From the IMG/VR virus record IMGVR_UViG_3300032242_002041, positions 124,001-188,000 of that record: a DNA stretch of 64,000 nt; one strand, given 5' to 3'. A program made the translations under genes and the position numbers. Positions 15,565-34,894 of the stretch are shown in pieces (position 1 is the stretch's first letter; each line of letters begins with the position of its first letter). The notes beneath the pieces are model-generated. The model searched no databases and was not told the origin of the DNA. It worked only from the letters and a program-made list of their open reading frames with translations.

Positions 15565-16677
15565 TTAAAATGTTAGTGGATAATATTTTGATCGAATCAT
15601 TGGTATAGCAAACAAATTGTCGGTGGTCATTCCAAAGTATTTTCCAGCCGAATCGTGATAGACATTTAACATTGATTTAACATAATCTTTAAACCATTTA
15701 GTATCTCTAGCACTATCAAACACTTCTTTACTTTGGCCTTGAAGCCTAGCTGTAGTGTAGTCGTTAGGATTATCAACTATCAACTTACAACCCCAATTGG
15801 CTATGTGTGGGTTTTTGCTGTTGGCCAAATCGCCATACCTTCCGGAGGCCAGGCTATATTCTAACCAATCAAATTTAATTGGACTGTGTAAATCATTGTA
15901 GTCAGCTAGATCTCTTGCATCTCGAGCATTAGGATGCTTGTTTTTTATATATTTAAACAGCATGTAGGATTGCTTGACATGTAATTCTGGTAAATCTGAA
16001 GTAAGGAAAAAGCATTCCATGCTAGGGCAATTCATTGGCCTAACATAATTGATATCATCTTGAAAACTATATACTCGGCCGTCTTCATCAAACTGTAATC
16101 TAGGCTTTTCGTATCCAATAATGGACATCACATCTCGGCCCATCATTGTGCATATTTTGTCATGCTCTACTTTCATGCCGCCATGCAAGTTAAATGTATA
16201 ACGTTCTGCTGTGTCCCAAATCCAATCTTCAGAGTGATACTTTTTTTCTAAAAATCCTAACTCTTCGTCGTCAACCATGATTTGACAATGGGGATCGTAC
16301 AGTCCTTTGTCAAAAAATTCATATACTTGACGATACTGTGATTGATATCTCTCGCCTTTTCTAACTCTGGTATACAGCATATCAATGTGTATATTATTGC
16401 GTTCAAATACTTTGTAAATGGTGTAGGCATCTGTGCCGCCACTGAAGTGTAGAACAATTGGTTTGTCTTGTGCTCTTGCTTTTTCAGCAACTTGGTGAGC
16501 TCGTATATCTAATAAACTATCCCAGCTGAGACTGGGCTCAACTGCCCAATTGACTGCATCAAACGCTGATTCAAAAAGATTGAATTTTATTTTTTGATTG
16601 GTTTTGTATGCGTAATTGGCAGCTTGAAATTTATTGAGAAAAAATTGATTGCCAACTTGATAGTGCATTTCATTCAT
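15565..16677 (-). CDS. PP-loop (adenine nucleotide alpha hydrolase-like) enzyme, paralog A
   Basis: LHFSGGTD, IIGYEKP, SDLPELHVKQ; start refined to MNEMHYQVG. Confidence 0.7.
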   Translation of the reverse strand: MNEMHYQVGNQFFLNKFQAANYAYKTNQKIKFNLFESAFDAVNWAVEPSLSWDSLLDIRAHQVAEKARAQDKPIVLHFSGGTDAYTIYKVFERNNIHIDMLYTRVRKGERYQSQYRQVYEFFDKGLYDPHCQIMVDDEELGFLEKKYHSEDWIWDTAERYTFNLHGGMKVEHDKICTMMGRDVMSIIGYEKPRLQFDEDGRVYSFQDDINYVRPMNCPSMECFFLTSDLPELHVKQSYMLFKYIKNKHPNARDARDLADYNDLHSPIKFDWLEYSLASGRYGDLANSKNPHIANWGCKLIVDNPNDYTTARLQGQSKEVFDSARDTKWFKDYVKSMLNVYHDSAGKYFGMTTDNLFAIPMIRSKYYPLTF

Positions 16678-16732
16678 AAAAATACTTATGCTGGGCATAA
16701 TTTTGATAATTAAATATATCCCCGGAGAAAAC

Positions 16733-17683
16733 ATGAAATATTTACTATTACTGTTGGCATTAATGGCGCCAATTATTGCCAATGCATTTGAGCCGCAAAA
16801 AAATCCTATTCAAATTGTTGTTTCGGCAGCACCAGGCGGCCCGGCTGACCAATTTGCCAGACTGTTTTCAGAATTTTTAACAACCCGTGGATATCCTGCT
16901 ACGGTAGTTAACAAACCAGGCGCTAATCGTACCTTGGGTGGTAATTATATCGAGTCCATTCCAGGTAATAATTATACCTTAATAGTTGGCACCAAATCAG
17001 ATTCCTTAATTAACACCATTGTAAAACCAGCTGGAATTCGATATAACGAAACAACATACACCCCGCTGGGAATGATTGGTTATGATTCCAACGTTTTCCT
17101 AATTAATAAATCACAAATACACAGCAGAGATATTACCATGTTCTTAGAAGAATATCGAGTCAACAACAAAAAAATTAATTTTGGTGTTCCTGGAATAGTT
17201 GCCGAGCTTGCTATCAGGGATTTTGTGCGGCCAACAGGCATAGAACCAACTATCTTACAATTTAAATCTTCCTCCGAAGTCACTGCCGCAGTGGCCGCAG
17301 GAACTGTACAAGTAGGAGTAAACGAGCTCACGGCATCGTTGCCTATGATTCGTTCAGGGTATGTTGGTGCGTTGGCAATTACAGCCCCACTAGGATCCAT
17401 TCATAGAAGTCCAAGTTTGCCTAATATTGAAGTAGTTCAAGAAGTTAATAAAAAATTTAATCGACACCACAATCAATGGTTTGGATTTTTTGGTCCTCAT
17501 GACATGAAACCTGAGGCTGTTAAATTTTACTCTGATATGATTGTTGCGTGGCAAACAGATCCTGTTGCTAAGGAAAAAATAGCCTTGCTAATTAATCCTA
17601 AAATAATGAACTCTCAGCAGTTTGAATCGTTCTATAGAGATCAGTTCGTGCAAGCCAAGAAGCTACTGCAAACCAGTGAATGA
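16733..17683 (+). CDS. Bug/TctC tripartite tricarboxylate transporter substrate-binding protein
   Basis: Signal peptide MKYLLLLLALMAPIIANA; APGGPAD, VVNKPGA, QWFGFFGP. Confidence 0.8.
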   Translation: MKYLLLLLALMAPIIANAFEPQKNPIQIVVSAAPGGPADQFARLFSEFLTTRGYPATVVNKPGANRTLGGNYIESIPGNNYTLIVGTKSDSLINTIVKPAGIRYNETTYTPLGMIGYDSNVFLINKSQIHSRDITMFLEEYRVNNKKINFGVPGIVAELAIRDFVRPTGIEPTILQFKSSSEVTAAVAAGTVQVGVNELTASLPMIRSGYVGALAITAPLGSIHRSPSLPNIEVVQEVNKKFNRHHNQWFGFFGPHDMKPEAVKFYSDMIVAWQTDPVAKEKIALLINPKIMNSQQFESFYRDQFVQAKKLLQTSE

Positions 17684-18341
17684 CATAACTATCTTTTATC
17701 AGGGTGCATCCGGCGGGTTTGCTCTATACTACTATCTACTACTAAGCGGCAAGTATCAGTATGATATCCCCACAGTAAAACAGATGATCGGCCAACAGTT
17801 TCCTGACTCGTTAAACAAAAATCGTTCAAGCTGGAAATCAAATGAGTTTTGGCCCGACAACGCTCAACTTAAAGATACACAGGGTAAAAAAATATTTCTA
17901 ATATGTAATCCATTGTTTGTTGATTCCATGTATGATATGCATAAAACTGTTAGCAATGATACTTACAAAATTTTACTCTACACTGATATACATCTACAGC
18001 TTCGTATGGCCTATGATAAGCAGGCCTACTGGTTTACATCAATAAGTCGACAAATGTTTAACGCACCTCGTAGCACTAAAAAGTATCTAAAGCGAATTAT
18101 TAATTCTAGCCTAGACTACAGGGATATTCAAGTAGATCCAGTATTTTTGGATGTAGTAGAAAAATTTTCACCAGATCAATTAATTAGACTGGAAGATTTT
18201 GTTAATTCTGCAACGATAAATAATTTTGCACCACCAAATCAGGATCAACGTGATTTTTTGAAATATTGGTTATCGTTGCAATCTCCTAAGGCAATACAGT
18301 TGATTGAAAAATACTATCGCACTCCTTTTACATTATGTTAA
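17676..18341 (+). CDS. Hypothetical protein, possible sulfotransferase/P-loop-like fold
   Basis: GTG start overlapping upstream stop; IFYQGASGGF. Confidence 0.5.
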   Translation: MNDITIFYQGASGGFALYYYLLLSGKYQYDIPTVKQMIGQQFPDSLNKNRSSWKSNEFWPDNAQLKDTQGKKIFLICNPLFVDSMYDMHKTVSNDTYKILLYTDIHLQLRMAYDKQAYWFTSISRQMFNAPRSTKKYLKRIINSSLDYRDIQVDPVFLDVVEKFSPDQLIRLEDFVNSATINNFAPPNQDQRDFLKYWLSLQSPKAIQLIEKYYRTPFTLC

Positions 18342-18796: not shown

Positions 18797-18801
18797 TTAA
18801 T

Positions 18802-19365
18802 ATGACTCAACTTGATCAAACAATTGTTAATAATTTTTATCGGAACAGAATTGAACCTGTTGCTGACGCACTACAGCGATTAAAAAGTCTAAAGTATTCT
18901 GGGCTCGCCCTGGTTAATAAAATTAACGCAACAGAATCAGTTGTGGATATAGGTTGCGGTAATAATATCTTCAAACAATTTATACCCAACTTAACGGGCG
19001 TTGACCCAATGTATGAGTCAGCTGACTATCAAACAGATCTTCAAAGTTTTGTAACAGATAAAAAATTTGATGTGGCATTTTGTTTGGGTAGTATTAACTA
19101 TGGCACAGTAGACAACATCACACAACAAATACAAAAAGTTATTGACTTGCTAACACCCGGTGGAAGAATTTATTGGCGCATTAAGTTAGGTCCGCATGCG
19201 CCAGGGGATATCAATAGTGCCGCTAACAAGTATCCGTGGACTCTAGCAGATATCTACCGGTTTGCTGAGCAGTTTGGATTCCGTGTGGCAGAACTTCAAG
19301 AGGAAGTGATAACCACTGGCGAACCAAACCCAGAACGCATATATGCGGAATGGACTAGACTATGA
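18802..19365 (+). CDS. Class I SAM-dependent methyltransferase
   Basis: VVDIGCG motif I; FDVAFCLGS. Confidence 0.8.
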   Translation: MTQLDQTIVNNFYRNRIEPVADALQRLKSLKYSGLALVNKINATESVVDIGCGNNIFKQFIPNLTGVDPMYESADYQTDLQSFVTDKKFDVAFCLGSINYGTVDNITQQIQKVIDLLTPGGRIYWRIKLGPHAPGDINSAANKYPWTLADIYRFAEQFGFRVAELQEEVITTGEPNPERIYAEWTRL

Positions 19366-20930
19366 AACAGTACGAAGTTGTCTTAATGACAGATACGTTC
19401 AAATACCACTGGCCTGCTTCGCGTCCATTGGCTATCTATCGCTTGGCCAGCCATTTGCGGGACAATGATATCACTGTAAAAACTGCAAATAAATTTTTGC
19501 ATATGACCATGGATCAATTCAAACGATGTATTGATCTTTATGTCTCTGACGCTACCGTACTTGTAGGCATCAGTGCCACAGTAATGTTTGATTACCCAAA
19601 GGGATGGTTTTTTGGCATTTCAGACGAGGAAATGTTAGAACGAATTGCTTATATTAAAAGTCGCAATCCTGCCGTAAAAGTAGTGGTAGGCGGAGCACAA
19701 GCCGATATTATGGACAACGAATTTTTACAAACCTTTAAGACCATTGACTATGTTTGCCAAGGTCAAGGCGAAAACATTCTACTGGCCATTTATCGACATC
19801 TTAAGTGGGGAGAAAAGCTACGATCCAGCGGACTTGAGTCGCCAAAAATTATAACAGAAAATTTTTACAAATACGAGGATTTTTGTTCAAGTAAGAACAC
19901 TTTTACCGAAGACGATGACATTGTGCCCAGAGAAGCACTACCGTTAGAAATTGCCCGCGGCTGTATTTTTAAATGTAAATTTTGTGCCTACGATTTAACA
20001 CAGAAAAAGTTTATGGACTACACAAAGACTTTTGATAACCTACGAGCTGAATTTATTAATAATTACGAAAATTTTCAAACCCAGCACTACTATACTTCGG
20101 ATGATTTGATCAACGACAGCGTGGAAAAGGTCGATATGTTGTTGGCTGTTACTGAATCTTTGCCTTTTAAAATTTATCTTGGCGGCTACATTCGTTTAGA
20201 TTTGGTGCGCAGATATCCAGACATGATTGAAAAATTAAAACGCATTGGGCTAGTAGGAGGGTTTGTTGGCATTGAAACCATCAATGATAAGAGCGGCCGC
20301 GCTGTAGGCAAAGGGCTAGGACGTCAACGTATCGAAGAAGCACTACAACAATGCAAGGATGTCTGGCAAGGGGAAGTTTATATACAAGCCGGGTTTATAC
20401 TTGGGTTGCCACACGACACAGTCGAAACAGGACCCGAGCTATACGAGTGGGGCAAGGCGGCAATTGATAATAGCCTAATTCATAAATTAAATATACAGCC
20501 GTTAAAAATTAACCCCAACCTAGGAAAATCTGACATAAACGAACATCCTGAAACTTATGGCTATCAAATTGAGTTAGAAGGTGCAAAGACAATATTTGCT
20601 CATCAAGCCCTGGTCAAAAAACCCAAAGGCATACACGACACAGCTGAGTGGAAAACAGAAACATATAATTCTAAACAAGCTGTAACAGACGCCGCACGAT
20701 ATAATACAGAATTAACACAGAGACAAGTAATACCTGAGTATGCCATAAGTCCGTTTGGATTGCCTATGATTTTGGCACTGCTACCCAAGGATCTTGCCGA
20801 ACAGTTTGTACGATATAATACCAGATTCATACCAGCCACAGACGAAATGACCAATAGATTTAAATCTGCATTGACAAGAAACTATAATAATTACGAACAA
20901 GCGTATTTTAAAAAGTTGTTACAACTTTAA
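19362..20930 (+). CDS. B12-binding radical SAM protein
   Basis: N-terminal cobalamin-type domain (VVVGGAQA, GQGE); ARGCIFKCKFC; FVGIET. Confidence 0.85.
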   Translation: MKQYEVVLMTDTFKYHWPASRPLAIYRLASHLRDNDITVKTANKFLHMTMDQFKRCIDLYVSDATVLVGISATVMFDYPKGWFFGISDEEMLERIAYIKSRNPAVKVVVGGAQADIMDNEFLQTFKTIDYVCQGQGENILLAIYRHLKWGEKLRSSGLESPKIITENFYKYEDFCSSKNTFTEDDDIVPREALPLEIARGCIFKCKFCAYDLTQKKFMDYTKTFDNLRAEFINNYENFQTQHYYTSDDLINDSVEKVDMLLAVTESLPFKIYLGGYIRLDLVRRYPDMIEKLKRIGLVGGFVGIETINDKSGRAVGKGLGRQRIEEALQQCKDVWQGEVYIQAGFILGLPHDTVETGPELYEWGKAAIDNSLIHKLNIQPLKINPNLGKSDINEHPETYGYQIELEGAKTIFAHQALVKKPKGIHDTAEWKTETYNSKQAVTDAARYNTELTQRQVIPEYAISPFGLPMILALLPKDLAEQFVRYNTRFIPATDEMTNRFKSALTRNYNNYEQAYFKKLLQL

Positions 20931-22387
20931 GTTTTAGAAAAGTAGTCTAATTTTTTTTGCTTGTATTGATCAACAAATTTATTAGTGTTAACGGCCAGCA
21001 CTTCAAAAGGATTTATTGTTGATTGTGCAGGGTGATATTTTGTCCACCAGCTGATAGATTCATAAACCACAGACATATCAAATATCATCCACGGGTTGCA
21101 CTTGATATTACCGGCAGATTGACGGTTAAGCTCATCACACAGGCCAATTGCTTGAGGTAGTGTTAATTGATCATTTTCCCATGCAACTAAACTAAGCCCT
21201 CGATCTCGTAATCCTCTACCCGATGGTATAGTTGTCTGTTTAACAGTTTCTTTATAGCCATACTTTGCGTAGTCCTGTTCAATAGGACTTAACACTTCGC
21301 CAGACCCGTTGTTTTGTTTAATTGACAAAGGAAACCAATACCACATGTCCATGGGTCGTTCGGTGTTTAGCCACTCACATATTTCTCTTTGTTTTTCAAC
21401 TGTGTCTTTAGGTAGCCCAGCAATAAAAGTACCGTAGATGAACAAGTCAGGATATTGTAGTCGAATGTCTTTTAGGTATTGTACCAGCAGGGTTGGATCA
21501 ACTGTTTTGCCTATAAGTCGACCTGTATCTTTGTTTAAGGAATCAATTCCAAAATGCACAGCAACTACTCCGGCTTTGACTAGTTTGTCTAATAGCCCGG
21601 GCTGTTTGTATAATAAATCGAGCCGCAGGAAGCAAACCACTTGAATAGGTTCGGGAATAAGAGTTGAAATATGTAGTAGTAAGTTGGCTTTTTCGTCAGT
21701 GTCATTAAACGTGCTATCTATTATTGAAAATTTGGTAATACCATAGTGTTGATAGGCATACAGGAATTCGTCAACAATGGCCTGCTCGCTCTTTTCAAAA
21801 TCTTGTTTACGGACGCCAATTGCACTGTGGTTGCAAAATGAACATTTAAAAATACAACCTCTTGAAAAAGTCACAACCTGAAATTCGTTAGGATCAACAA
21901 AGTCAGTGGGCAAATATTTGATACTAAACGCACTGGCCTTCATGTCGTTAGGATAGTCACGACTGGCGTTTACCAGCTGATTGGCGGATTTAACTGTGCT
22001 AGGATTTTGAAGTATTTCTAGAACAGCAGTTTCGGCGAAACCCTCCACATAGTAATCGGCATTGGCATAGTTTAAGCGCAATACTCGTTCGCCAAAAATT
22101 ATAATTTTAGCATCGGGGACTATGATTTTGATCTTGGTGTAGAGCAACTCCCAGTCATTGTACCTTTTGTCCAGGGTAGAAACCATGCATATAAATTCTG
22201 GTTGGTTATTTTTGATTATGCTGGACAACTCATCCACAGTAAAATCATGAAGAAAATCAACTACATCTACTTGAATGTTGTGCCCTCTAAGAAAGCTGGC
22301 CATGACATGTGCAGCAGAATTACGTTTAATTCCTTGACGATATCCGTTGTATTGATTCCAATTGTCTGAGAATATTAAACCGTGCAT
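20927..22387 (-). CDS. B12-binding radical SAM protein (paralog of 19362..20930)
   Basis: SRGCIFKCSFC; IDSTFN; HFGIDS; TAAATA 7 nt upstream. Confidence 0.85.
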   Translation of the reverse strand: MHGLIFSDNWNQYNGYRQGIKRNSAAHVMASFLRGHNIQVDVVDFLHDFTVDELSSIIKNNQPEFICMVSTLDKRYNDWELLYTKIKIIVPDAKIIIFGERVLRLNYANADYYVEGFAETAVLEILQNPSTVKSANQLVNASRDYPNDMKASAFSIKYLPTDFVDPNEFQVVTFSRGCIFKCSFCNHSAIGVRKQDFEKSEQAIVDEFLYAYQHYGITKFSIIDSTFNDTDEKANLLLHISTLIPEPIQVVCFLRLDLLYKQPGLLDKLVKAGVVAVHFGIDSLNKDTGRLIGKTVDPTLLVQYLKDIRLQYPDLFIYGTFIAGLPKDTVEKQREICEWLNTERPMDMWYWFPLSIKQNNGSGEVLSPIEQDYAKYGYKETVKQTTIPSGRGLRDRGLSLVAWENDQLTLPQAIGLCDELNRQSAGNIKCNPWMIFDMSVVYESISWWTKYHPAQSTINPFEVLAVNTNKFVDQYKQKKLDYFSKT

Positions 22388-22404: not shown

Positions 22405-22434
22405 AAAAAACCCTGCGATTTTTACATCGCAGGG
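22405..22434 (-). terminator. Intrinsic terminator
   Basis: CCCTGCGAT/ATCGCAGGG stem followed by TTTTTT. Confidence 0.8.
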
Positions 22435-23027
22435 CCGTTGCCGTTCTTGAAACCTACTTCACCACCTTCTGCCTCGATACGTTTGATAACGTCTTCAAAC
22501 AAGATAGGTGCAAAGTCCGGGGTTTGTTCTACGCATACGCAATGGTAGCGTGGATCAATCTCATCATTGTAAAGAAGTTCACCTGTTTTAACATTAACAC
22601 CACGAATTTTCTTTACGCGATTAGCGTGAAGGTGTCCGTGAATATTAACACCAAAGCGACCAAGACTTTCTGGGTGAACCGGAATATGACTAAGAATCAT
22701 CCCATTCATCACATGGTATCCACGTAGACTTCTAAAGTAAGGAGTATAGTCCTCATCCTTAAAGATGTCGTGATTGCCACGTATGAGAACTTTGTCACCG
22801 TTTAGCCTATCCAGAATAGGCAAGGCTTTGCGGTTAATAACCACATCACCCAAATGGTAAACCTTGTCATTTGGACGGACACGTTCGTTCCATGCGGCAA
22901 CCATGGCTTCGTCCATTTCCTTGGGATCAGTCCATGGGCGAAGTTTTGTAACACCATCCGTGCGGGTGAAGCGACACACACCAGCATGACCAAAGTGTGT
23001 ATCGCTTGTTAAAAATACTGCTGGCAT
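22422..23027 (-). CDS. Calcineurin-like metallophosphoesterase
   Basis: SDTHFGH, HLGD, GNHD, HGHLH. Confidence 0.9.
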   Translation of the reverse strand: MPAVFLTSDTHFGHAGVCRFTRTDGVTKLRPWTDPKEMDEAMVAAWNERVRPNDKVYHLGDVVINRKALPILDRLNGDKVLIRGNHDIFKDEDYTPYFRSLRGYHVMNGMILSHIPVHPESLGRFGVNIHGHLHANRVKKIRGVNVKTGELLYNDEIDPRYHCVCVEQTPDFAPILFEDVIKRIEAEGGEVGFKNGNGPAM

Positions 23028-25036: not shown

Positions 25037-25807
25037 ATGTCCACATATAACATAGAAGTACATGATAATTTAATAGCTCCAGATTTGCATGAAAAAATTT
25101 ATCAATATATAAAAACACTTACCTTTACAGGAGTTTGGTTGGAAGCCAAACGAGTTGAATTTGATTATAGTCTCAACAGTCCCAAAAATCCAGCCGACTG
25201 GATGTTGTATCAAAGTATGGGCAGAGAACTACAATTACATCGGTGCCCGTTAGCCAGCGACGAGCACAGTTTAAAGGCCTTTCCGCCAATTTATTTGTTA
25301 TGGAAAGAGATAAATCGTCGACTAGACAATCAATTTGAGTTAGCTGGGAATCCAGAAGGCATGGCTACTCCGTTAAAAATTCCAACTCCGCAAGATTCTA
25401 ATTTAAAAACAGGATGGCGTGCCTATATAAATGCCCACTATAATACACACGCAGGACACGGCGGCGACGGTTATGCACATCGAGATACACCGTTAGAATA
25501 TAATGATGAAAACACTGTTACTATGCTGTATATTGCTAATCCAGATTGGTATCCATCATGGTCGGGCGATTTAAAATTCTACGGCGAAGATCCCGAAGGA
25601 CTATCCAAAGATCATCAACAGTTTAATCGTGGTATACAGCAACGACGAAATTACAATGTTGGGTGGTTAGATCAAGGACGTGTAGTAAGTCCAGTTCCCG
25701 GACGTTTGATTGTATATGATGGACGTTGTCTACACGGAACTACTTTACCAAGTTCTCCTCTTGAAACACCAATTATTAAAATAGCATTTCGTGCTAGACG
25801 AAAATAA
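25037..25807 (+). CDS. 2OG-Fe(II) oxygenase (prolyl-hydroxylase-like)
   Basis: AHRD, WSGDL, LHG, KIAFR; TAAATA at 25026-25031. Confidence 0.8.
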   Translation: MSTYNIEVHDNLIAPDLHEKIYQYIKTLTFTGVWLEAKRVEFDYSLNSPKNPADWMLYQSMGRELQLHRCPLASDEHSLKAFPPIYLLWKEINRRLDNQFELAGNPEGMATPLKIPTPQDSNLKTGWRAYINAHYNTHAGHGGDGYAHRDTPLEYNDENTVTMLYIANPDWYPSWSGDLKFYGEDPEGLSKDHQQFNRGIQQRRNYNVGWLDQGRVVSPVPGRLIVYDGRCLHGTTLPSSPLETPIIKIAFRARRK

Positions 25808-26528: not shown

Positions 26529-27737
26529 ATGCAAGCAACTCACCCTGTTCTTTTTGCAGACTCTAAAGCGCCATTTGATACTGTTGCTAAAAATGGCTAT
26601 TATCAAGTTGGCAATCAATTTTTTAATCATAAGATATCAGCTTTGATAGAAGCTACAAAAACCAATCAATCCGTACAATGGCATTTCAATGATCCGGTAT
26701 GGAATAAAATAAACTGGCGCAGCAATGATTCAATACCGGTTACATATTGGTATCAAGAACGAGCAAAACAATTAAGAGACAAATATGATTATCTGATCTT
26801 GGCATTCAGCGGAGGCAGAGACAGTCATAATGTATTACATAGTTTTATTGATAATGATATTCATTTAGATGAAGTCTGGTGCGATTGGCCGCTTCAACAT
26901 ACTGAAGGAAAGTTTGATTTAAATCCACATGATTGTTCTCCAGAGAACATGCCAAGCGAGTGGACCTATAGTATTAAACCAGAACTAGATCGACTGGCTC
27001 AATCGCATTCTCTTACAAAAATTACCATAACTGATTCTACTTCTACATTGGCTGACGAAAATGCCGAAGATACTTTGATGATATCTCAATACGCATTTTA
27101 TGCCACTGTCAAACGTTTTAGAGAATTAGATACTATTGTTCGACAGCGCAGTAAAAAATACGCTCGGGTAGGAGTCATTGTAGGCATTGAAAAACCACAA
27201 TATCTAATAATCAACGGCTTTATGTCATTGTTTTTTAGCGACAGCACCATGCAGATAAAATCTGACAGCATTGGAGACTGTACTAGAGAAGTTGAATATT
27301 TCTATTGGTCAGCTGATCTGCCCGAGTTGGTTAGATCGCAAGGACATGCAATCCTTGATTACCTAAGAGCCAATCCATGGGCACAGCAATTGCAATCTTT
27401 TGCATCAATTAAAAATAATCTTACAGTTACCATTGATACTCCAGAACAAAGCCAGGCCTGGAGAAATTTAATAAACTACGCAATTTATCCACAATGGGAC
27501 AATAAATTTCAAGTAGCTAAACCTATTGATTTTTTATACAATAATGAATATTATTCTTGGCTGACCAGTCATCAAGATCTCAGGGCATTACAAAGTCATC
27601 GTAATGCCTTGGATAACTCACTAAAATTGGTAGATCACAGATTTTTTAAAAAAGCACACAATAATGCAATTTTAAATTATAAACCTTTTACTACAAAATT
27701 TTTACCAGTTGGAAAACTAGAAAATTTACTAGATTAG
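26529..27737 (+). CDS. PP-loop enzyme, paralog B
   Basis: LAFSGGRDS, IVGIEKP, EYFYWSADLPE; TAAATA at 26515-26520. Confidence 0.75.
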   Translation: MQATHPVLFADSKAPFDTVAKNGYYQVGNQFFNHKISALIEATKTNQSVQWHFNDPVWNKINWRSNDSIPVTYWYQERAKQLRDKYDYLILAFSGGRDSHNVLHSFIDNDIHLDEVWCDWPLQHTEGKFDLNPHDCSPENMPSEWTYSIKPELDRLAQSHSLTKITITDSTSTLADENAEDTLMISQYAFYATVKRFRELDTIVRQRSKKYARVGVIVGIEKPQYLIINGFMSLFFSDSTMQIKSDSIGDCTREVEYFYWSADLPELVRSQGHAILDYLRANPWAQQLQSFASIKNNLTVTIDTPEQSQAWRNLINYAIYPQWDNKFQVAKPIDFLYNNEYYSWLTSHQDLRALQSHRNALDNSLKLVDHRFFKKAHNNAILNYKPFTTKFLPVGKLENLLD

Positions 27738-27738: not shown

Positions 27739-28671
27739 TTACCGAGTTTCTGATATTTGTTTTTCGTAACGATGTACCAAGGCTTTTATTTGCAGTACAC
27801 GCAAATTAAAAAATTCTTCGGTTGACATTTTTGGTTTCCTAAACATAGGAGGACTCATATCCGATGAACTGCTTATGTAATCTGCTCCAAGTTTTTCTTG
27901 TGCTTGATCTAAGATGCGGGCAATTTCCTGTCGCTTGGCCACAGGCATTTTAACATTTGCTACAGTGCTCATAAAAATTGTTGGAGTATTAAATCCTTGC
28001 TCGGATAACGTTTTAATTTCGGGAACTAACGGATTTCTAGTAGGGCAACTGATTCCTAATATTTTTAAGTTGGGATTTTTTGATTTGAAGATTTGATAAT
28101 TTGATACTCGCTCAATTACAAAGTTAATAGGCTCTCCAGCAGCCATTTGAGTCAACGCATCATAGTTGGCTTTATAAACAATATACCTAACTTTAAATCC
28201 TAACTTTTCGCCAATAATAAGTGCAGTTAAATGTGTGGCATTTCCGTAGCCGGTTCCGCCAACAGTAATTTCTTTTTGACCTTTTAGGCTAGCGATTCCT
28301 TGTTGAGTATTACCGATGTTAGTGATTACCGCCCAACAAGCATCACCTTGGGTAGCAACAGGAACATAATCGGATTCATTAATTAACCCCTGTCTTGCAT
28401 TTTCAACAAACGACGGCGCTACTGTGGCCAACCGTGTTTGTGGATTTTGATCCATGGTTTTCAATGCAATGACACCTTGTGCCCCTGGTTTAAATTCTAA
28501 TATAAATTCATATTTATTTTGGCTTCGATTGGCTATGTCCAGCATTTTAATATATGGTGTTGCATTTGGTTGATTGGCGGCAGCTCCAAATTCAATAACA
28601 ATTGTTTCTTGCGCCAACACAGATTGAAATGCTGTTATACAAGCTAATAGACTCAATATTTTTTTAATCAT
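27739..28671 (-). CDS. Bug/TctC-like substrate-binding protein
   Basis: Signal peptide MIKKILSLLACITAFQSVLA; EFKPGAQG, GGTGYGNATHL, IKTLSEQG. Confidence 0.75.
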   Translation of the reverse strand: MIKKILSLLACITAFQSVLAQETIVIEFGAAANQPNATPYIKMLDIANRSQNKYEFILEFKPGAQGVIALKTMDQNPQTRLATVAPSFVENARQGLINESDYVPVATQGDACWAVITNIGNTQQGIASLKGQKEITVGGTGYGNATHLTALIIGEKLGFKVRYIVYKANYDALTQMAAGEPINFVIERVSNYQIFKSKNPNLKILGISCPTRNPLVPEIKTLSEQGFNTPTIFMSTVANVKMPVAKRQEIARILDQAQEKLGADYISSSSDMSPPMFRKPKMSTEEFFNLRVLQIKALVHRYEKQISETR

Positions 28672-28715: not shown

Positions 28716-29762
28716 ATGCTTAATATACAAGACATTCGTCAAGTACAGATAGAACTCACCACTCGGTGCAATGCTCGTTGCCCGATGTGCATGAGAAATT
28801 ATCGCGGCCTGGATTTCAATTCTGGATATCCTGAAACAGAACTTACTTTAGATAACATAAAACAAATTTTGCAACCAGAATTTTTAAAGCAATTAACTAA
28901 AGGAATAAGCTTCAACGGCAATTTAGGCGATTTTGGGCTAGCCCGAGATGCACAAGAAATAGTACAATGGTTAACAGATCAAGGTGTTCCAGTATACATC
29001 AATTCTAACGCTAGTATGCGTACACCAGACTGGTGGGCCCGACTGGCCCGTCCTGGAGTCAGAATTGGATTTGCCATTGATGGATTAGCGGATACGCACA
29101 GTTTGTACAGACAAGATACCGATTGGCACCGAGTAATAGCCAATGCAACTGCATTTATTCAAGCAGGCGGGCATGCTATTTGGCGCTTTATTCCTTTTGA
29201 TCATAACCAACATCAAGAACAAGCCTGTAAAGATTTAGCTAAAGAACTAGGTTTTTTTCAATTTGAAAATATTAACGAAGGCCGCAACCGCGGGCCTGTA
29301 TATTCTAGACTAGGAGAGTTCAGTCATTGGCTTGGCGAACCTTTTACCGATCAAGAAAAACTAAACCCACCTGATATAAAATCAATGTTAGAAAGTCATG
29401 TTACTTGGTTTGACTATCGTACGGTTAAATCTAACAAAGACACCCAGCCATTAAATTTAATCTGTAATCATAAGCGTATTAAAGAAATTTATATTGCAGC
29501 AGACGGAACTGTTTACCCATGTTGCTTTTTGGGCTTTTATCCCACAACAATGAATCATCCTGGTAATAAAGAATTAAAACCAATGATTAAAAATAACAAC
29601 GCCCTAGAATATCCATTGGAAGAATGCATTAATTGGTTTAACGAAGTTGAAAAATCTTGGGATCGTTCCAGTATTGCCGACGGTAGATTATACACTTGTG
29701 TTAATACTTGTGGGCAACATGACACTCCTATTTTTGCAAAACACAAACAAGAGATAATATGA
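28716..29762 (+). CDS. Radical SAM protein with C-terminal SPASM/Twitch-like domain
   Basis: CNARCPMC; YIAADGTVYPCC; CVNTC; TATAAATA 4 nt upstream. Confidence 0.85.
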   Translation: MLNIQDIRQVQIELTTRCNARCPMCMRNYRGLDFNSGYPETELTLDNIKQILQPEFLKQLTKGISFNGNLGDFGLARDAQEIVQWLTDQGVPVYINSNASMRTPDWWARLARPGVRIGFAIDGLADTHSLYRQDTDWHRVIANATAFIQAGGHAIWRFIPFDHNQHQEQACKDLAKELGFFQFENINEGRNRGPVYSRLGEFSHWLGEPFTDQEKLNPPDIKSMLESHVTWFDYRTVKSNKDTQPLNLICNHKRIKEIYIAADGTVYPCCFLGFYPTTMNHPGNKELKPMIKNNNALEYPLEECINWFNEVEKSWDRSSIADGRLYTCVNTCGQHDTPIFAKHKQEII

Positions 29763-30637
29763 CCAATAGAATAGTAATAGATAAATTAGAATTTTACATC
29801 ACTAACGTATGTAATCTGACTTGTAGTGGATGTAATAGATATAATAATTATAAGTTTGCTGGCTGGGAAAATTGGAATGATTATGAAAAGATTTTTGAAC
29901 AATGGGCAGAAAAAATTGACATTATTAAACCGGTAATATTAGGTGGAGAACCTTTGCTTAATCCCACTATCAACGAGTGGATCAACGGAATTCAGCGAAT
30001 ATGGCCCGCCCACTACTCGCCACAAATTCAAAGCAATGGAACACGTATAGATTTGGTTGACGGGTTATACAACGCATGTCGTAAATCGGGTACATGGATT
30101 GGCATTAGCCTTCATGTGCAAGACGATAGAGATGCTATTTTTAATCGTATTAGAAATTTTTTAGTGCATCCAATTAACGAAACAACTGACAGTAGCTCAC
30201 AACACGGATCAAATTGTCAATTTGTTGATGCAAATAACGTACAAGTGCATGTATGGTTATCTGATCATTTTACACAAAACAATATTATAGAAGGCCCTAT
30301 GGGAGAATTTAAACTATACAATAGTGATCCTATTCTGGCACACAATAACTGTGCATTTGTTAAATTTAAAAATTATCATTTTATCAATGGAAAAATTCAC
30401 AAGTGTGGACCAGCTCCCCTAATGCAACAATTTGATCAGCAGTATCCTTTTAGTATATCAGATGAGGATCGTGCGCTTATACACAGTTATCGAGGGTTAT
30501 CGGTAGATGAATTTGACGAGCGTGGTGAAGAATTTTTCCGTACCATAGATGATCCTATACCACAGTGTAAATTTTGTCCTGAATCATATGAGTATAAAAA
30601 AATACAATTTTCAAATCTAAAGCCTAACAAAATTTAA
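29759..30637 (+). CDS. Radical SAM protein
   Basis: CNLTCSGC; LGGEPLL; C-terminal CKFC. Confidence 0.85.
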   Translation: MTNRIVIDKLEFYITNVCNLTCSGCNRYNNYKFAGWENWNDYEKIFEQWAEKIDIIKPVILGGEPLLNPTINEWINGIQRIWPAHYSPQIQSNGTRIDLVDGLYNACRKSGTWIGISLHVQDDRDAIFNRIRNFLVHPINETTDSSSQHGSNCQFVDANNVQVHVWLSDHFTQNNIIEGPMGEFKLYNSDPILAHNNCAFVKFKNYHFINGKIHKCGPAPLMQQFDQQYPFSISDEDRALIHSYRGLSVDEFDERGEEFFRTIDDPIPQCKFCPESYEYKKIQFSNLKPNKI

Positions 30638-30687: not shown

Positions 30688-31140
30688 TTAGAATGAGTAC
30701 TTAACACCGGCTGTTACAATGTTACCATTGTAGGCTTTGGTAATGTTGTTGCCCTTTTGGTAAGCATAGTCTGCAACCAAATTGATTTTAGAAGTAACTG
30801 GATACGCAACACCAGCACCAGCGAACCCAGCGCCGCCATTGGAAGTCTTTGGACTTTGTGGATCAATATAAGCAACACCAGCACGAACATTGGTTTGTAC
30901 AGGACCTAGTTTAATTACATCGTAGCTGACACTTGCTGTGTAACGATTAACGTCAACACGTTGAGTTGTGCTACGATCTGCAGTAGCTTGAATACCAACT
31001 TTGCCAAAAGATTGACCTGCAGAGATACCAACCAAGTTACTGTCGGAACCCATGTTGCGTCCGCCATATACACCAACATCGGCGGCACTGACCAGCCCAG
31101 CGGATACAGTTAATGCTACTGCTAAAAATAGTTGTTTCAT
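30688..31140 (-). CDS. Small outer-membrane beta-barrel protein (OmpA/Ail/Lom-like)
   Basis: Signal peptide; alternating beta-strands; C-terminal GVKYSF. Confidence 0.8.
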   Translation of the reverse strand: MKQLFLAVALTVSAGLVSAADVGVYGGRNMGSDSNLVGISAGQSFGKVGIQATADRSTTQRVDVNRYTASVSYDVIKLGPVQTNVRAGVAYIDPQSPKTSNGGAGFAGAGVAYPVTSKINLVADYAYQKGNNITKAYNGNIVTAGVKYSF

Positions 31141-31261
31141 TTGATTTATTTCCTTTTAAGAATGGGCACAGATTTATGTCCCGTGAATAATATTTAGTGG
31201 GTTTTACTGATGGACAGCAAAAATGCCAACTTTTTGTTAGTTTTTGGAGTTAACGGCGTAT

Positions 31262-31288
31262 AAAAAGAAACCCGCCGAAGCGGGTTCT
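31262..31288 (-). terminator. Intrinsic terminator downstream of tmRNA
   Basis: AACCCGC-TTCG-GCGGGTT followed by TCTTTTT. Confidence 0.85.
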
Positions 31289-31289
31289 A

Positions 31290-31645
31290 CTATTTTCTGT
31301 TACGAGGTATAATTACCCTAAGCAGTGATTAAACTGCTAAAGATTGACGTTGTGCTGTACGAGCAGAGAACTTAACGTTCTTACCTGAAACAGTTACTTC
31401 GCCTGTATTTGCGTTTGCATTTACGAGATTTGCTTCTTCGACCGAGCTTCCCCAGTCCTAACGGCTTTAGCTTTGCCGATTCTCCAATAGCCCTTGTGTG
31501 CCAATCGATACCAAATTCATCCCCACCGAAGCATACTGTTTTCACCCTCCGAACTTCACGCTGGGTAACGCATCACAATACACTTCGGTGGAGATGTCGG
31601 GGCTTGAACCCGAGTCTTGCTCACCCTACTTCTATCTTCAACGAA
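31290..31645 (-). ncRNA. ssrA: Circularly permuted (two-piece) tmRNA
   Basis: Acceptor piece GACTCGGGTTCAAGCCCCGACATCTCCA (to 31589) precedes 5' piece GGGGATG (31524); intervening self-complementary stem; tag ORF 31418-31329 ANANTGEVTVSGKNVKFSARTAQRQSLAV; outer ends approximate. Confidence 0.85.
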
Positions 31646-31777
31646 TTTTATTTTGTGGCATACTTTTTTAAGTCGACCACTACTAAACCCTTTATGTTGG
31701 ACAAGAGTTCGACCAACTTTTACTCTAAGACACAGTTTGCCTTCACTACGAAGGAATTACAACAATTCTTTTAAAAC

Positions 31778-32020: not shown

Positions 32021-32039
32021 ATAAATTCCTTTTTAATTT

Positions 32040-32297: not shown

Positions 32298-32337
32298 ATA
32301 AATTCCTTTTTAATTTTAATGCTTAATACTAAACAAT

Positions 32338-32505
32338 TCAGTTGTATCCTTTAACTGCTTTTCCGTCAATTTTAGGATTACCACGGGCACACACTTCTAA
32401 ATACTTTTCACGGTTGCGCTCTTCGGGTAACGGACCACAACCTAAGCGATCCCACTCTTTGTCAGAATAAAAAAACTGTTTTACAGGTTTGTTGTTTTGC
32501 TCCAT
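32338..32505 (-). CDS. Hypothetical protein (55 aa)
   Basis: Manual translation MEQNNKPVKQFFYSDKEWDRLGCGPLPEERNREKYLEVCARGNPKIDGKAVKGYN. Confidence 0.6.
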   Translation of the reverse strand: MEQNNKPVKQFFYSDKEWDRLGCGPLPEERNREKYLEVCARGNPKIDGKAVKGYN

Positions 32506-32580
32506 ACCCGAGTATTTAGCGTATTATTTGATTTTAATCTTAAAACTTAATTTGAGTACAGGGCCGTAAGCAAAAATATT

Positions 32581-32622
32581 ATTATACAGGTTAGTGCTAG
32601 GGGTTGCAACCCCTAGCTAACC
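32581..32622 (-). promoter_or_regulatory. Sigma70-type promoter with -35 centred in a 22-bp perfect palindrome
   Basis: TTGCAA-17-TATAAT; GCTAGGGGTTGCAACCCCTAGC at 32596-32617. Confidence 0.7.
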
Positions 32623-32625
32623 ATT

Positions 32626-33564
32626 TTAACTACGTTTGATTTGATCAACTAATCCAGGAGTGAAATAGTCTTGATACTTGTCATATACCACCTGTGTTGC
32701 CTGAGCAAAACGAGCTTGCTCTTGGGTTGACATTTTAACAACTTCAATGCCATCCGCTATGCAACGGTCTTGCACCAATTTGATATCAGCAACACTTAAA
32801 TCACGCTCGTGACTGGCAGCAACTCGAGCAGCATCGGCTACAACTGTTTGCAATTCTGGGCTTAATGTATTCCAAAAATCTGTGCCAACCAAAATACTAG
32901 TTAAAAACAAACTGTGCTCTGTGTGGTTTACAACCTTGGATACTCGATCTTGACCTAGGGCATAAACACGTGGGTAGGTACTTTCACCAACAGTAACATC
33001 GGCTTGTTCTAAACCTGTGGCTAACTCTTCTAACTCCATTGGCACTACATCGGCGCCAACTGCTTTAAATGTGTCAATAGCAACAGGGCTATGACTTGTG
33101 CGAATTTTCAAACCGCGCAGATCTTCAATCTTGGCAACTGTTTCGTTTCCTGGAATAATGCGGAAGCCGCCTGAGTATGTAAATGCCAGACCTTTAACCT
33201 TCTTGGACTCTTGAAGACTGTCCAATAACTGTTGGCCCACTGCTCCTTCAAATACACGACTAGCATGATCGTGATCAGTGAACAAGAATGGTAAGTCTAA
33301 TGCAAAAAAGTCTTTGTTTACTTTGCCCAGGGTAATGGTGTAGGTTTGACTCATTTCAATTTTACCAGCATCCAATAAATCTAACAATTCGTGTTTGGTC
33401 ACTACGACATTGTTGTTATATTTTTTTGAGTATTCGCCCATGGTCATAACTTCGATATCTAATTGGCCTGGCGCACGAGCATTTACTTCTGCGGCAAATA
33501 CCTTAGCTGCGCGAATGAATAGTTCAATTGGTTCGTGGGCCAATACCCATTTAATATGTTTCAT
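32626..33564 (-). CDS. TRAP transporter substrate-binding protein (DctP-like), no signal peptide
   Basis: ALDLPFLF, GFR, DLRGLKIR, VVPM, TEHS. Confidence 0.85.
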   Translation of the reverse strand: MKHIKWVLAHEPIELFIRAAKVFAAEVNARAPGQLDIEVMTMGEYSKKYNNNVVVTKHELLDLLDAGKIEMSQTYTITLGKVNKDFFALDLPFLFTDHDHASRVFEGAVGQQLLDSLQESKKVKGLAFTYSGGFRIIPGNETVAKIEDLRGLKIRTSHSPVAIDTFKAVGADVVPMELEELATGLEQADVTVGESTYPRVYALGQDRVSKVVNHTEHSLFLTSILVGTDFWNTLSPELQTVVADAARVAASHERDLSVADIKLVQDRCIADGIEVVKMSTQEQARFAQATQVVYDKYQDYFTPGLVDQIKRS

Positions 33565-33700
33565 GTAATCTCCGTTTGATTTTAGAGCTTGCGAAAGATT
33601 TCGCTTACGGGCGGCGTTCCACGTGTAACACAGTGGTAAAAGGGTCGTACCCTAGGCGTCTGCTGAATCCGACGTCAACTGGCTGTTGGCGTTGCTAGTT
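33565..33700 (-). promoter_or_regulatory. Structured 5' leader (candidate riboswitch) of the dctP-like gene
   Basis: Starts just after TATAAATA (33702-33709); hairpins CAAC/GTTG, AGGGT/ACCCT, CCAC/GTGG, GCGAAA/TTTCGC; GC-rich relative to the genome. Confidence 0.45.
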
Positions 33701-33709
33701 TTATTTATA

Positions 33710-34894
33710 TTAAAATTTTGAAAAGTTATTAATTCCGGTATCTTGATAATCTGCAGGTCCTAGGCAATAAAACGGGCTTAAAAATCCTACAAATCCTACA
33801 GGGTTACCTAATTCATGATTAAAAAACTTGTCATCAATATTATCGACTAGTAATTTAAGTCCGGCCTGCCAGGCTCGATATGCGTCAGTTTCTTTAAAAT
33901 TGGTGTAAAACCAAAAATCCATTTCATTATAAAAACTATTGGTAGGTTTGGCTGTTTGAAATGTGGCCGGATCATAGTCGGGATAGATCAACGGTTTAAC
34001 CATCTGTTCGTAGGCTGTCCTATGAGCAATACTATGGTTGGGCCAACGTACTAGATACTGTAAAAATTTATTCTGCGGCAACATAAACCAATTTTTAATA
34101 ATATGGGCTTGTTTATGCACGATCTCCGGCAGGTCAGGAGTCCAGTAAAAATACTCGTTGGTAATGTTATCGTAATCGCCCATGACCGAATTACTATGGT
34201 TGGCCTGTAGATCCATAAAATACACATACCATTTACCATCTCGAATGCACATTTTGGGTTTATCTATTCCGTACAATACACAGATACGCTTGCCACGGTC
34301 AGCATCACGGCGGTGATCAATATAGCCTACATTGTCGTGTTTGAAAGCATGCCCGGGTTGGAAATAATCCTTGCTTTTAAACACCCAGGTTTCGTCTAGC
34401 TCGCCTTTTAACATGTTTTCTGAATAGTCGTGCATGGTAACTTTTACAGCAGGATGATTAACAGTGATCCAGTTCAACAAGGGCTTTGCAGCAAATTCCC
34501 ATTCGCTTAGTGTGTTTTCGCACTTGGTGTTGTAGGGATCATTGTGTACATTCTTTTCACCGGTTTTAGGATAACGGAATACTACTTCGTCAAGATGTAT
34601 GCCATTGTTAAGAAAACTATAGATAGCTGTGGTACTGTCCCCACCGCCCGATGCTTCTACACGTATCCAGTCGTACTGTTCTCTAAGTTGTTGGGCCCGC
34701 AGGCGATACAATTCTTTAATTGATAACTGCGGTTCAATTTCCCAATTAATTTTATCAAACACATCACGATTAAATTGCCACTCAGGAAAATGCCTGGTCT
34801 TGGTAGACTCAATTAACGCTTCTACTTTACCATAGAATGTTTTGTCACCTACGTGATAGTAACCTAATTTGCGATTGTTTTCTAATTTAAACAT
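33710..34894 (-). CDS. PP-loop enzyme, paralog C
   Basis: VEASGGGDS, LYGIDKP, EYFYWTPDLPEIVHKQ. Confidence 0.75.
   Translation of the reverse strand: MFKLENNRKLGYYHVGDKTFYGKVEALIESTKTRHFPEWQFNRDVFDKINWEIEPQLSIKELYRLRAQQLREQYDWIRVEASGGGDSTTAIYSFLNNGIHLDEVVFRYPKTGEKNVHNDPYNTKCENTLSEWEFAAKPLLNWITVNHPAVKVTMHDYSENMLKGELDETWVFKSKDYFQPGHAFKHDNVGYIDHRRDADRGKRICVLYGIDKPKMCIRDGKWYVYFMDLQANHSNSVMGDYDNITNEYFYWTPDLPEIVHKQAHIIKNWFMLPQNKFLQYLVRWPNHSIAHRTAYEQMVKPLIYPDYDPATFQTAKPTNSFYNEMDFWFYTNFKETDAYRAWQAGLKLLVDNIDDKFFNHELGNPVGFVGFLSPFYCLGPADYQDTGINNFSKF

Follow-up and report, generated by a model that had tools for sequence, protein, structure and literature searches.

A clear association between a previously unannotated enzyme, predicted to belong to the PP-loop ATP-pyrophosphatases, and organic-acid-binding transport proteins was found in an uncultured freshwater giant phage, which carries three copies of the gene pair. 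The same linkage, sometimes with the membrane permease as well, recurs across many related phages and points to a virus-encoded pathway, not described so far, in which an organic acid would be imported and chemically captured. The analysis started from a window of 64,000 nucleotides (positions 124,001 to 188,000 of IMG/VR record IMGVR_UViG_3300032242_002041), for which an earlier note had described three paralogous enzymes, each neighboured by a gene for a solute-binding protein. That observation was borne out by our analysis. The open reading frames exist as described (Table 1), and the paralogy is significant (PP2-PP3 E 1e-54, PP1-PP3 3e-16, PP1-PP2 3e-13), whereas no fourth copy was found in the window. 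The sequence motifs listed in the note proved to be invariant columns of the three-way alignment: Y13, V15, G16, F20, K23 and A26; S82, G83, G84 and D86; G209, K212 and P213; and E247, F249, D254, L255, P256 and E257. With about 70 genes in random order, the probability that three enzyme genes each lie next to a different binder gene is about 1.3e-4.

Table 1. Position and arrangement of the module genes and related features (coordinates refer to the 64,000-nt window)
Feature	Position	Strand	Length	Arrangement and remarks
PP1	15565-16677	-	370 aa	Most divergent paralogue of the new PP-loop family; loop reads SGGTDA, with the last Ser replaced by Ala
TctC1	16733-17683	+		TTT solute-binding protein with export signal; divergent from PP1, 55 nt apart
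PP2	26529-27737	+	402 aa	PP-loop family paralogue
TctC2	27739-28671	-		Divergent TTT solute-binding protein with export signal; convergent with PP2, one base between the stops
DctP	32626-33564	-		Leaderless DctP-type (TRAP family 7) binding protein, predicted to be cytoplasmic; in tandem, 145 nt downstream of PP3
PP3	33710-34894	-	394 aa	Best-conserved paralogue and the one modelled
Promoter and tRNA-Met	34930-35075	-		Perfect sigma-70 consensus promoter (35075-35047; 12/12 match) followed by tRNA-Met (35004-34930), directly upstream of PP3 and DctP; likely transcription start of that module (promoter function inferred only)
UDP-sugar dehydrogenase	39430-40665

The enzyme matches no Pfam, NCBIfam, PHROG or PDB-sequence family. 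Its assignment rests on a confident AlphaFold (AF2) model of PP3 (pLDDT 93.7, pTM 0.92), in which the SGGxDS loop lies between strand 76-81 and helix 85-95, i.e. at the N-terminus of the helix that follows the first core strand. In an alignment of 143 diverse members S82, G83, D86 and S87 are at least 90% conserved and G84 is invariant. A Foldseek comparison gave probabilities of 0.99-1.0 to the Rossmann-like core of known superfamily members, namely carbapenam synthetase (E 1.8e-4 over 374 columns), the ATP-PPase domains of GMP synthetase, the N-acetyl-sugar amidotransferase 8wex, LarE, NAD synthetase and beta-lactam synthetase, although for most hits only about 160 residues of core could be aligned, at TM 0.2-0.34. 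Phage 'asparagine synthases' followed in BFVD. Nevertheless, the enzyme does not classify as an asparagine synthetase B: neither the three paralogues nor 124 members scanned at E up to 1 gave a Pfam Asn_synthase hit, and only about 60-75 residues precede the PP-loop strand, which leaves no N-terminal glutaminase domain. The family is large (1683 clusters at 50% identity, almost all from uncultured phages). PP3 alone has 867 homologues, the clade of PP1 exists elsewhere (family member P0246, and related phage locus L077 at 47% identity), and PP2 is the sister of family member P0121 in the family tree.

The solute-binding proteins are genuine members of their families. TctC1 and TctC2 matched Pfam TctC at 2e-19 and 4e-9 (70.4 and 36.8 bits against a cut-off of 27). 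The best PDB match of TctC1 is 2dvz at 5e-20, with the APGGxxDxxAR loop kept, whereas the AF2 model of TctC2 (pLDDT 94.4) had all of its 17 best PDB matches in TTT binders (TM 0.65-0.78), including TphC/TBP, BugD, Bug27, MatC and AdpC. DctP matched Pfam DctP at 3e-54 (184.5 bits), NCBIfam NF037995 at 138.9 bits against a cut-off of 50, and PDB 4p47 at 1e-30. The two types differ in their predicted location. TctC1 has an N-terminal hydrophobic leader ending in ANA, followed by FEP, and TctC2 has a signal-like N-terminus. Using a crude heuristic for signal peptides (not SignalP), we found such an N-terminal segment in 79 of 85 TctC homologues, but in 0 of 55 DctP homologues and in only 2 of 129 enzymes. 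In fact, the DctP protein of the window starts directly at the first strand of the fold, which corrects the earlier picture: leaderless, it cannot act as a periplasmic receptor. Both the enzyme and DctP are under strong purifying selection (dN/dS of 0.03 for PP3 and 0.06-0.09 for DctP).

Whether homologues of the enzyme elsewhere are also enriched for adjacent binder genes had been set as a test beforehand, and in the related phage loci this proved to be the case. In 67 dereplicated related phage loci, 63 of 95 enzyme genes directly abut a binder gene, against 19.2 +/- 3.6 when gene order is shuffled (maximum of 33 in 2000 shuffles). TctC and DctP are the families most often co-located with the enzyme, with 59 loci each against 32 for the best syntenic neighbour. 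Same-strand pairs of TctC and the enzyme mostly overlap or lie within 10 nt (24/29 with TctC upstream and 16/27 with TctC downstream), often with overlapping stop and start codons, and although the gene order within the trio is shuffled among phages the linkage is kept. It should be noted that most of these statistics come from one phage lineage, so that shared ancestry inflates the counts, and that the gene calls, like the signal-peptide and transmembrane calls, were based on crude heuristics. Of the 32 clades of the enzyme that share less than 45% identity, 19 show adjacency, including clades sampled independently from metagenomes.

The note had pointed out that cognate membrane subunits are lacking and had called the binders orphans, which holds for the window only. 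Within the window no ORF of at least 70 aa has more than three TM-like segments, and thus neither TctA nor DctM is present. Among 92 loci, the only proteins with six or more TM segments are TctA, one MFS transporter and Bax1-I, so that DctQ/DctM partners for DctP were not found. In contrast, TctA (Pfam 4e-29 to 2e-69) lies directly beside the enzyme in three related loci (L012, L019 and L039). A reciprocal scan seeded with TctA revealed TctA-TctC-enzyme operons in, among others, loci L114, L129 and L133. The enzyme lies within 5 kb of TctA in 13 of the 24 phage loci recovered in this way, whereas 11 of them lack it. Beside the phage TctA our crude TM scan showed no consistent ORF with two or more TM segments that could represent TctB, a subunit that is poorly conserved (PMC5812351).

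Considering these data, we favor the reading that each module is a phage-borne accessory piece of a tripartite-tricarboxylate-transporter (TTT) uptake route, joined to a cytoplasmic enzyme of a new PP-loop family; we would give it a probability of about 0.5. In this view, the exported TctC-like protein binds an organic acid in the host periplasm and delivers it to a TctA permease, which would be that of the host in this phage and is phage-encoded in some relatives. Inside the cell the enzyme would use ATP to adenylate an oxygen of the compound, most likely of a carboxylate, after which AMP would be displaced by a nitrogen nucleophile as in AsnB, beta-lactam synthetase and sugar amidotransferases, thereby converting and trapping the imported molecule. 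The leaderless DctP-like protein would be a cytoplasmic binder in the same pathway that holds substrate or product. What the analysis itself establishes are the (modelled) folds, the motifs, the export signals as far as the heuristic allows, the purifying selection and the gene linkage including TctA; that binder and enzyme share a ligand, the substrate-dependent cleavage of ATP to AMP and PPi and the adenylation chemistry as such, the role of DctP and the benefit to the phage are all inferred, and a sugar acid or another small carboxylate is only a lead for the ligand. Some observations argue against a strict coupling. The enzyme and the exported binder are in different compartments, and thus any coupling is indirect. 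About 40% of the enzyme clades sampled, including a chromosomal clade in Bacteriovoracaceae, have no adjacent binder, and the enzyme therefore does not need one. Moreover, the Arg of the carboxylate clamp is lost in 14 of 46 phage DctPs, and PP1 has the Ala at the last PP-loop position. On the other hand, there is precedent for the arrangement, as orphan Bug/TctC genes placed next to the enzyme that consumes the imported carboxylate are known in beta-proteobacteria (PMC5812351).

The interpretation given in the earlier note was thus supported in part. The note had proposed a functional partnership of PP-loop enzyme and binder, and this partnership is much stronger than could be seen from the window alone. 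Its suggestion that the binder captures a carboxylate that the enzyme activates is the best-supported mechanism, although it remains an inference. Its further suggestions, i.e. ligation onto a virion, tRNA or DNA target, or an enzyme that makes a signal sensed by the binder, found no support.

The analysis defines a large PP-loop enzyme family without annotation and provides it with a concrete and testable context in TTT-type organic-acid uptake. TTT transporters are among the least understood systems that depend on solute-binding proteins. An enzyme partner of TctA/TctC, a phage-encoded TTT system, or a family of leaderless, cytoplasmic TRAP-type binders is not known to us, and our literature searches revealed none. 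If the coupling is real, it shows that giant freshwater phages remodel the nutrient import of the host and immediately commit the imported acid by ATP-dependent chemistry, and the compact TctA-TctC-enzyme operons could be expressed and assayed directly. A bolder version, which we consider unlikely, would be a phage-encoded import-and-activate machine in which the enzyme docks on TctA and adenylates the solute as it emerges, a step resembling group translocation for a secondary transporter, with the leaderless DctP as a cytoplasmic acceptor that mirrors the periplasmic TctC donor. This would be a four-part system with binding proteins on both faces of the membrane, diversified into several ligand-specific paralogue sets per phage genome.

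The main alternative, although in our view clearly less likely, is that the genes travel together without a shared ligand. The enzyme would then act on an endogenous substrate, for example by amidating or ligating a sugar acid or nucleotide sugar for glycan or envelope modification, and the binders would be independent nutrient-uptake genes that cluster with it only because the hypervariable, tRNA-rich island expands and shuffles its gene families. Indeed, the bacterial clade of the enzyme sits with an NAD-epimerase/dehydratase, a DegT aminotransferase, glycosyltransferases and a spermine-synthase-like membrane protein, and with no binder. In addition, Foldseek hit an N-acetyl-sugar amidotransferase of similar length, a UDP-sugar dehydrogenase lies in the window (Table 1), a sugar-nucleotidyltransferase recurs in 14 related loci, and the island is rich in radical SAM genes, methyltransferases and tRNAs. 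However, adjacency far exceeds that of shuffled gene order within the same loci, TctC-enzyme pairs are usually translationally overlapped, the linkage survives repeated reordering and reappears from the TctA side, and the binders are more tightly linked to the enzyme than any other neighbour.

It is less likely still that the PP-loop protein is an ATP-sensing regulatory subunit of the transporter rather than a catalyst, comparable to the universal stress protein TeaD, which is encoded with, and regulates, the TRAP transporter TeaABC and belongs to the same adenine-nucleotide alpha-hydrolase superfamily. The operon linkage with TctA and TctC, the fold shared with USPs (at the level of the superfamily only) and the degenerate last loop residue of PP1 would be in line with such a role. 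Yet the complete SGGxDS loop is at least 90% conserved across the 143 members, the best structural matches are synthetases and not USPs, the protein of about 390 aa has conserved acidic and Lys residues outside the loop and is more than twice the size of a USP, and one clade works without any transporter genes. Modification of a macromolecule, in analogy to the action of TilS, MnmA, TtcA or QueC-type enzymes on tRNA, or of DNA or a virion protein, with the binders supplying or sensing the small-molecule donor, appears very unlikely. Ten tRNA genes and a tmRNA are interleaved with the modules and there are weak hits to QueC, but these cover only the loop motif, the family is mildly acidic (median pI 6.5; 13% of members above 8), no RNA-binding domains were detected in the domain searches, and the tRNA thiolases rank below the small-molecule synthetases in the fold search. 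Finally, a role of the binders in defence or exclusion or as decoys, i.e. as exported proteins that block a host uptake route or receptor with the enzyme being unrelated, appears the least likely of these readings, for although the TctC homologues are exported, numerous and fast-diverging (18 clades at 40% identity), some phages encode the permease TctA next to them, which argues for transport, and the ligand-loop motifs are kept in TctC1.

A comparison with known systems shows where the modules agree with them and where they depart. The AsnB-type synthetase-domain enzymes without active glutaminase, carbapenam synthetase CarA (1q19) and beta-lactam synthetase (1jgt, 1m1z), adenylate a carboxylate and form an amide; they share the PP-loop Rossmann-like core, give the longest structural alignments to the PP3 model and have a strand followed by a G-x-D motif after the core (GxDKP here). 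However, there is no sequence-level match to Pfam Asn_synthase, TM is only about 0.3, PP3 has a 60-residue N-terminal mini-domain instead of the Ntn domain of roughly 200 aa, and its C-terminal domain is distinct, with conserved FYWTPDxPE and IYPxWD...FQxxKP motifs. The N-acetyl sugar amidotransferase of LPS biosynthesis from Legionella (PDB 8wex; WbpG-like) is, like the phage enzyme, a stand-alone PP-loop protein of about 380 aa (Foldseek E 2.5e-3), and the bacterial relatives of the phage enzyme also lie among sugar-modifying genes, but TM is 0.24-0.30, an NCBIfam or Pfam match is absent and the phage enzymes are linked to transport genes and not to O-antigen genes.

With the TTT transporters (TctCBA) and the orphan Bug/TctC binders that lie beside substrate-consuming enzymes in beta-proteobacteria (PMC5812351; Bug27/69, PMC11452294) the modules share the exported TctC binders, the frequent lack of an adjacent permease, the position of the binder gene next to a gene for a cytoplasmic enzyme and the presence of TctA in some loci. 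They differ in being encoded by phages, in having a new PP-loop family as the partner enzyme, in the short TctA (about 430-445 aa) and possibly in the lack of TctB, as the crude TM scan showed no TctB-like gene beside the phage TctA. The TRAP DctP solute receptors, including the hexuronate binders (4n15, 4mhf; PMC7660916), are clearly of the same family as the phage DctP, and the copy in the window keeps both Arg positions that align with the carboxylate-binding site. In contrast to these receptors, the phage homologues examined have no signal peptide, no DctQ/DctM in the loci, losses of the Arg, and an association with TTT rather than TRAP genes. More distant parallels are phage auxiliary binding-protein genes such as cyanophage pstS and the vectorial acylation by FadL/FadD, where a phage supplies a periplasmic binder to boost a host transporter and where uptake is coupled to an immediate adenylate-forming activation that traps the solute, although the transporter class, the enzyme superfamily and the multi-paralogue organisation all differ.

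The window is part of the 228-kb IMG/VR contig UViG_3300032242_002041, which comes from an uncultured large phage that encodes a family-B DNA polymerase, a 5'-3' exonuclease and many unknown proteins, and that carries ten tRNA genes and a permuted tmRNA. A comparison with the GenBank phages revealed no close relative at the DNA level and no protein match to PP3, the third of the enzyme paralogues (PP1 to PP3). A 57-nt match to Burkholderia phage FLC9 falls on tRNA-Glu. The TctA and DctP proteins matched only low-identity, apparently bacterial or unannotated GenBank records. Homologues of PP3 occur on contigs of up to 365 kb that are labelled 'uncultured Caudovirales phage'.

The observation made in the earlier note, that three paralogous enzyme genes each neighbour a solute-binding protein gene, was confirmed. 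All six ORFs are present in the divergent, convergent and tandem arrangements described, the three enzymes are significantly related (E 1e-54, 3e-16 and 3e-13), and there is no fourth copy in the window. The motifs that had been listed for the paralogues (Y.VG...F..K..A, SGGxD(S), G.[ED]KP and [EY]F[FY]...DLPE) correspond to invariant columns in the three-way alignment. The neighbours are a TctC (2e-19), a second and more divergent TctC (4e-9) and a DctP (3e-54, also above the NCBIfam cut-off). The divergent TctC2 was modelled at pLDDT 94.4, and its 17 best PDB matches are all TTT binders (TM 0.65-0.78). In line with the note, no ORF in the window looks like a polytopic permease. The probability that three enzyme genes each lie beside a different binder gene by chance was estimated at about 1e-4 under random gene order.

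The three enzymes did not match any model in scans of Pfam, NCBIfam and PHROG, a per-member Pfam scan of 124 diverse relatives gave noise only, and PDB sequence profiles found only the loop of QueC, at E 1.5. The family is nevertheless large, as 867 close homologues of PP3 were found and a profile search gave 1683 representatives at 50% identity, which form many deep clades. The genome collection gave only 8 hits, all in MAGs. On basis of a 143-sequence alignment, AlphaFold2 yielded a confident model (pLDDT 93.7, pTM 0.92) that Foldseek places in the PP-loop ATP-pyrophosphatase superfamily. The longest alignments are to carbapenam synthetase and beta-lactam synthetase, followed by core-only alignments to GMP synthetase, LarE, NAD synthetase and TtuA, and a stand-alone N-acetyl-sugar amidotransferase (8wex) is also hit. 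The TM scores are low (0.2-0.34), the core being shared whereas the 60-residue N-terminal domain and the C-terminal domain are the family's own. In BFVD only uncharacterised proteins of uncultured phages match well, and phage 'asparagine synthases' come next. The SGGxDS loop is at least 90% conserved, there is no glutaminase domain, PP3 is under strong purifying selection (dN/dS 0.03) and the family is mildly acidic.

TctC1 keeps the APGGxxDxxAR loop that is typical of Bug proteins, and its best PDB match is 2dvz. The best PDB relatives of the DctP homologue are TRAP binders, of which only 4n15 and 4mhf were confirmed as hexuronate binders (PMC7660916), and at about 25-30% identity this is only a lead. 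The carboxylate-clamp arginine is kept in the window's DctP and in 32 of 46 phage homologues. The partners differ in predicted location. Across the fetched loci, 79 of 85 TctC homologues have an N-terminal hydrophobic leader, compared to none of 55 DctP homologues and 2 of 129 enzymes, as scored with a simple signal-peptide heuristic of our own. So the TctC partners are predicted to be exported, while the DctP partner and the enzymes are predicted to stay in the cytoplasm. In at least 10 related phages (L001, L032, L049, L056, L057, L062, L064, L069, L073, L074 and L086, where L numbers denote the related loci retrieved) one DctP paralogue is encoded as two overlapping ORFs of about 160 aa each, with a frame offset of +1 in some and -1 in others, which could represent a conserved split gene or a frameshift.

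A lack of enrichment for adjacent binder genes among homologues had been named beforehand as an outcome that would overturn the proposed partnership, and the gene context was studied in other genomes. IMG/VR holds 436 loci that encode a relative of the enzyme, of which the best 80, all PP3 orthologues at 51-100% identity, were fetched. ORFs were called with a simple procedure of our own and scanned with iteratively built HMMs, which were derived from the same loci that they scored. TctC and DctP are the families most often found with the enzyme, in 59 loci each, against 32 for the most frequent syntenic neighbour. In 67 dereplicated loci, 63 of 95 enzyme genes have a binder as immediate neighbour, whereas the figure is 19.2 +/- 3.6, with a maximum of 33 in 2000 shuffles, when gene order is shuffled within each locus. 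It should be noted that most loci belong to one phage lineage, so that the counts are not independent events. TctC-enzyme pairs lie on the same strand and mostly overlap or are within 10 nt of each other, and DctP follows the enzyme after about 150 nt. The order of the trio differs among phages (DctP-TctC-PP3, PP3-TctC-DctP, PP3-DctP-TctC), yet the linkage is kept, and genomes often carry three to five enzyme paralogues and as many binders (e.g. L078-L081). Contexts sampled from other deep clades in metagenomes again show TctC directly adjacent (clade members P0242, P0246 and P0134), although one does not (P0176), and two further contexts lay on contigs too short to be informative. Overall, 19 of 32 clades that share less than 45% identity have a member immediately next to TctC, DctP or TctA.

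A scan of the loci for polytopic proteins, which relied on an equally simple detection of TM segments, uncovered TctA homologues directly beside the enzyme. More specifically, L039 has PP3 and then TctA after 2 nt, L019 has PP3-DctP-TctA, and L012 has TctA, then an exported protein of about 300 aa, then the enzyme. A new IMG/VR scan seeded with these TctAs returned 24 loci at 21-100% identity. The arrangements included TctA-TctC-enzyme (L114, L129, L133), TctA-enzyme (L116), enzyme-TctA with or without TctC (L112, L113, L117), TctA-TctC with the enzyme further on (L118, L119), and TctA-TctC-DctP without the enzyme (L121-L124, L131). Thirteen of the 24 loci have the enzyme within 5 kb of TctA. 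The seed TctAs came from enzyme-linked loci and hence this test is not fully independent. Nevertheless, the retrieved TctAs are very divergent. No TctB-like gene was evident beside the phage TctA in a crude scan for TM segments. Related loci also carry further small PP-loop-like proteins, an MFS sugar transporter beside DctP, and Bax1-I family membrane proteins.

The association is not absolute, as some enzyme genes have no binder nearby (L008, L104, L107). In addition, a chromosomal clade exists in Bacteriovoracaceae-like bacteria (L099, L134), on contigs of up to 2.17 Mb, where the gene lies next to a spermine-synthase-like membrane protein of roughly 700 aa and, in L134, with an NAD-epimerase/dehydratase, a DegT-type aminotransferase and glycosyltransferases. 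The enzyme therefore does not require a binder. Sugar-acid or amine chemistry is a reasonable lead, considering that relatives carry a sugar-nucleotidyltransferase nearby and that the window encodes a UDP-glucose/GDP-mannose dehydrogenase homologue 4.5 kb from PP3, which would make a sugar acid and is a possible source of an endogenous carboxylate substrate.

The ten tRNA genes, all on the minus strand, are interleaved with the modules, and three perfect 12/12 sigma-70 consensus sequences (TTGACA-17-TATAAT), putative promoters, each lie just upstream of a tRNA gene, one of them also heading PP3-DctP. The permuted tmRNA gene is of the two-piece type, ARAGORN gives a tag peptide for it and Rfam RF04321 scores 70.5 bits, and the 121-aa ORF that overlaps it is probably spurious. 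Five radical SAM genes include two that resemble B12-binding types (of which only the first hits Pfam B12-binding), a SPASM type and a twitch-domain type. They lie alongside a methyltransferase, a 2OG-Fe(II) oxygenase and a metallophosphoesterase. NCBIfam did not assign the radical SAM genes to any specific family. A radical SAM family also recurs in 21 related loci. A gene for a 150-aa outer-membrane beta-barrel lies between the radical SAM pair and the tmRNA, and a DUF2201 protein and an AAA ATPase are encoded a few kb apart, a pairing that may form its own system.

Coordinates of features in the window and in related loci
Sequence	Position	Strand	Feature
window	1528-2823	-	DUF2201 metallopeptidase/VWA-like protein
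window	8472-9557	-	AAA (MoxR-like) ATPase
window	11543-35004	-	Region with ten tRNA genes
window	18802-19365		Methyltransferase
window	19362-20930	+	Radical SAM gene
window	20927-22387	-	Radical SAM gene
window	22422-23027		Metallophosphoesterase
window	24992-24964		Sigma-70 consensus promoter, putative
window	25037-25807		2OG-Fe(II) oxygenase
window	26463-26435		Sigma-70 consensus promoter, putative
window	28716-29762	+	Radical SAM gene
window	29759-30637	+	Radical SAM gene
window	30688-31140	-	Outer-membrane beta-barrel (OMP_b-brl)
window	31238-31678	-	Permuted tmRNA
window	31409-31774	+	ORF of 121 aa, probably spurious
window	35075-35047		Sigma-70 consensus promoter, putative, heading PP3-DctP
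window	39430-40665	-	UDP-glucose/GDP-mannose dehydrogenase homologue
window	55715-56890	-	Radical SAM gene
L001	8068-9019		DctP paralogue in two overlapping ORFs
L099	8004-9083		Enzyme of the chromosomal clade
L134	7001-8089		Enzyme of the chromosomal clade
L104; L039; L008	269-1180 and 2695-3606; 12705-13988; 1322-2041	+ and - (L104)	Small PP-loop-like proteins (weak QueC and PAPS-reductase hits), MFS sugar transporter beside DctP, Bax1-I family membrane proteins

The best-supported reading is an accessory TTT uptake route coupled to ATP-dependent capture in the cytoplasm. In this view, the exported TctC would bind an organic acid, the TctA of the host or a phage-encoded one would import it, the PP-loop enzyme would adenylate it and form an amide or a related product, and the leaderless DctP would bind substrate or product. 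The folds, motifs, localisation signals, selection and linkage follow directly from the analysis, whereas a ligand shared by binder and enzyme, the chemistry, the role of DctP and the benefit to the phage are inferred from sequence, predicted structure and gene context alone. The interpretation given in the earlier note was thus supported in part, as its proposal that the binder captures a carboxylate that the enzyme activates agrees with this reading, whereas a tRNA or DNA target was set aside. Of the alternatives, independent accessory genes that merely travel together remain the main rival, a regulatory role like that of USP/TeaD and a macromolecular target were considered and set aside, and so was a decoy role.

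Four elements appear to be new, i.e. the enzyme family itself, its systematic coupling to TTT components, phage-encoded TctA and a leaderless DctP lineage. Literature searches on phage TctC, TRAP or PP-loop links found nothing relevant and no description of any of these. The general kind of system, a binder gene beside a substrate-processing enzyme or a phage-borne binder gene, is however known. In fact, the proposed route mirrors a layout in beta-proteobacteria, where orphan Bug binders sit next to the enzyme that consumes the imported carboxylate (PMC5812351). It also resembles adenylation-coupled uptake such as FadL/FadD.
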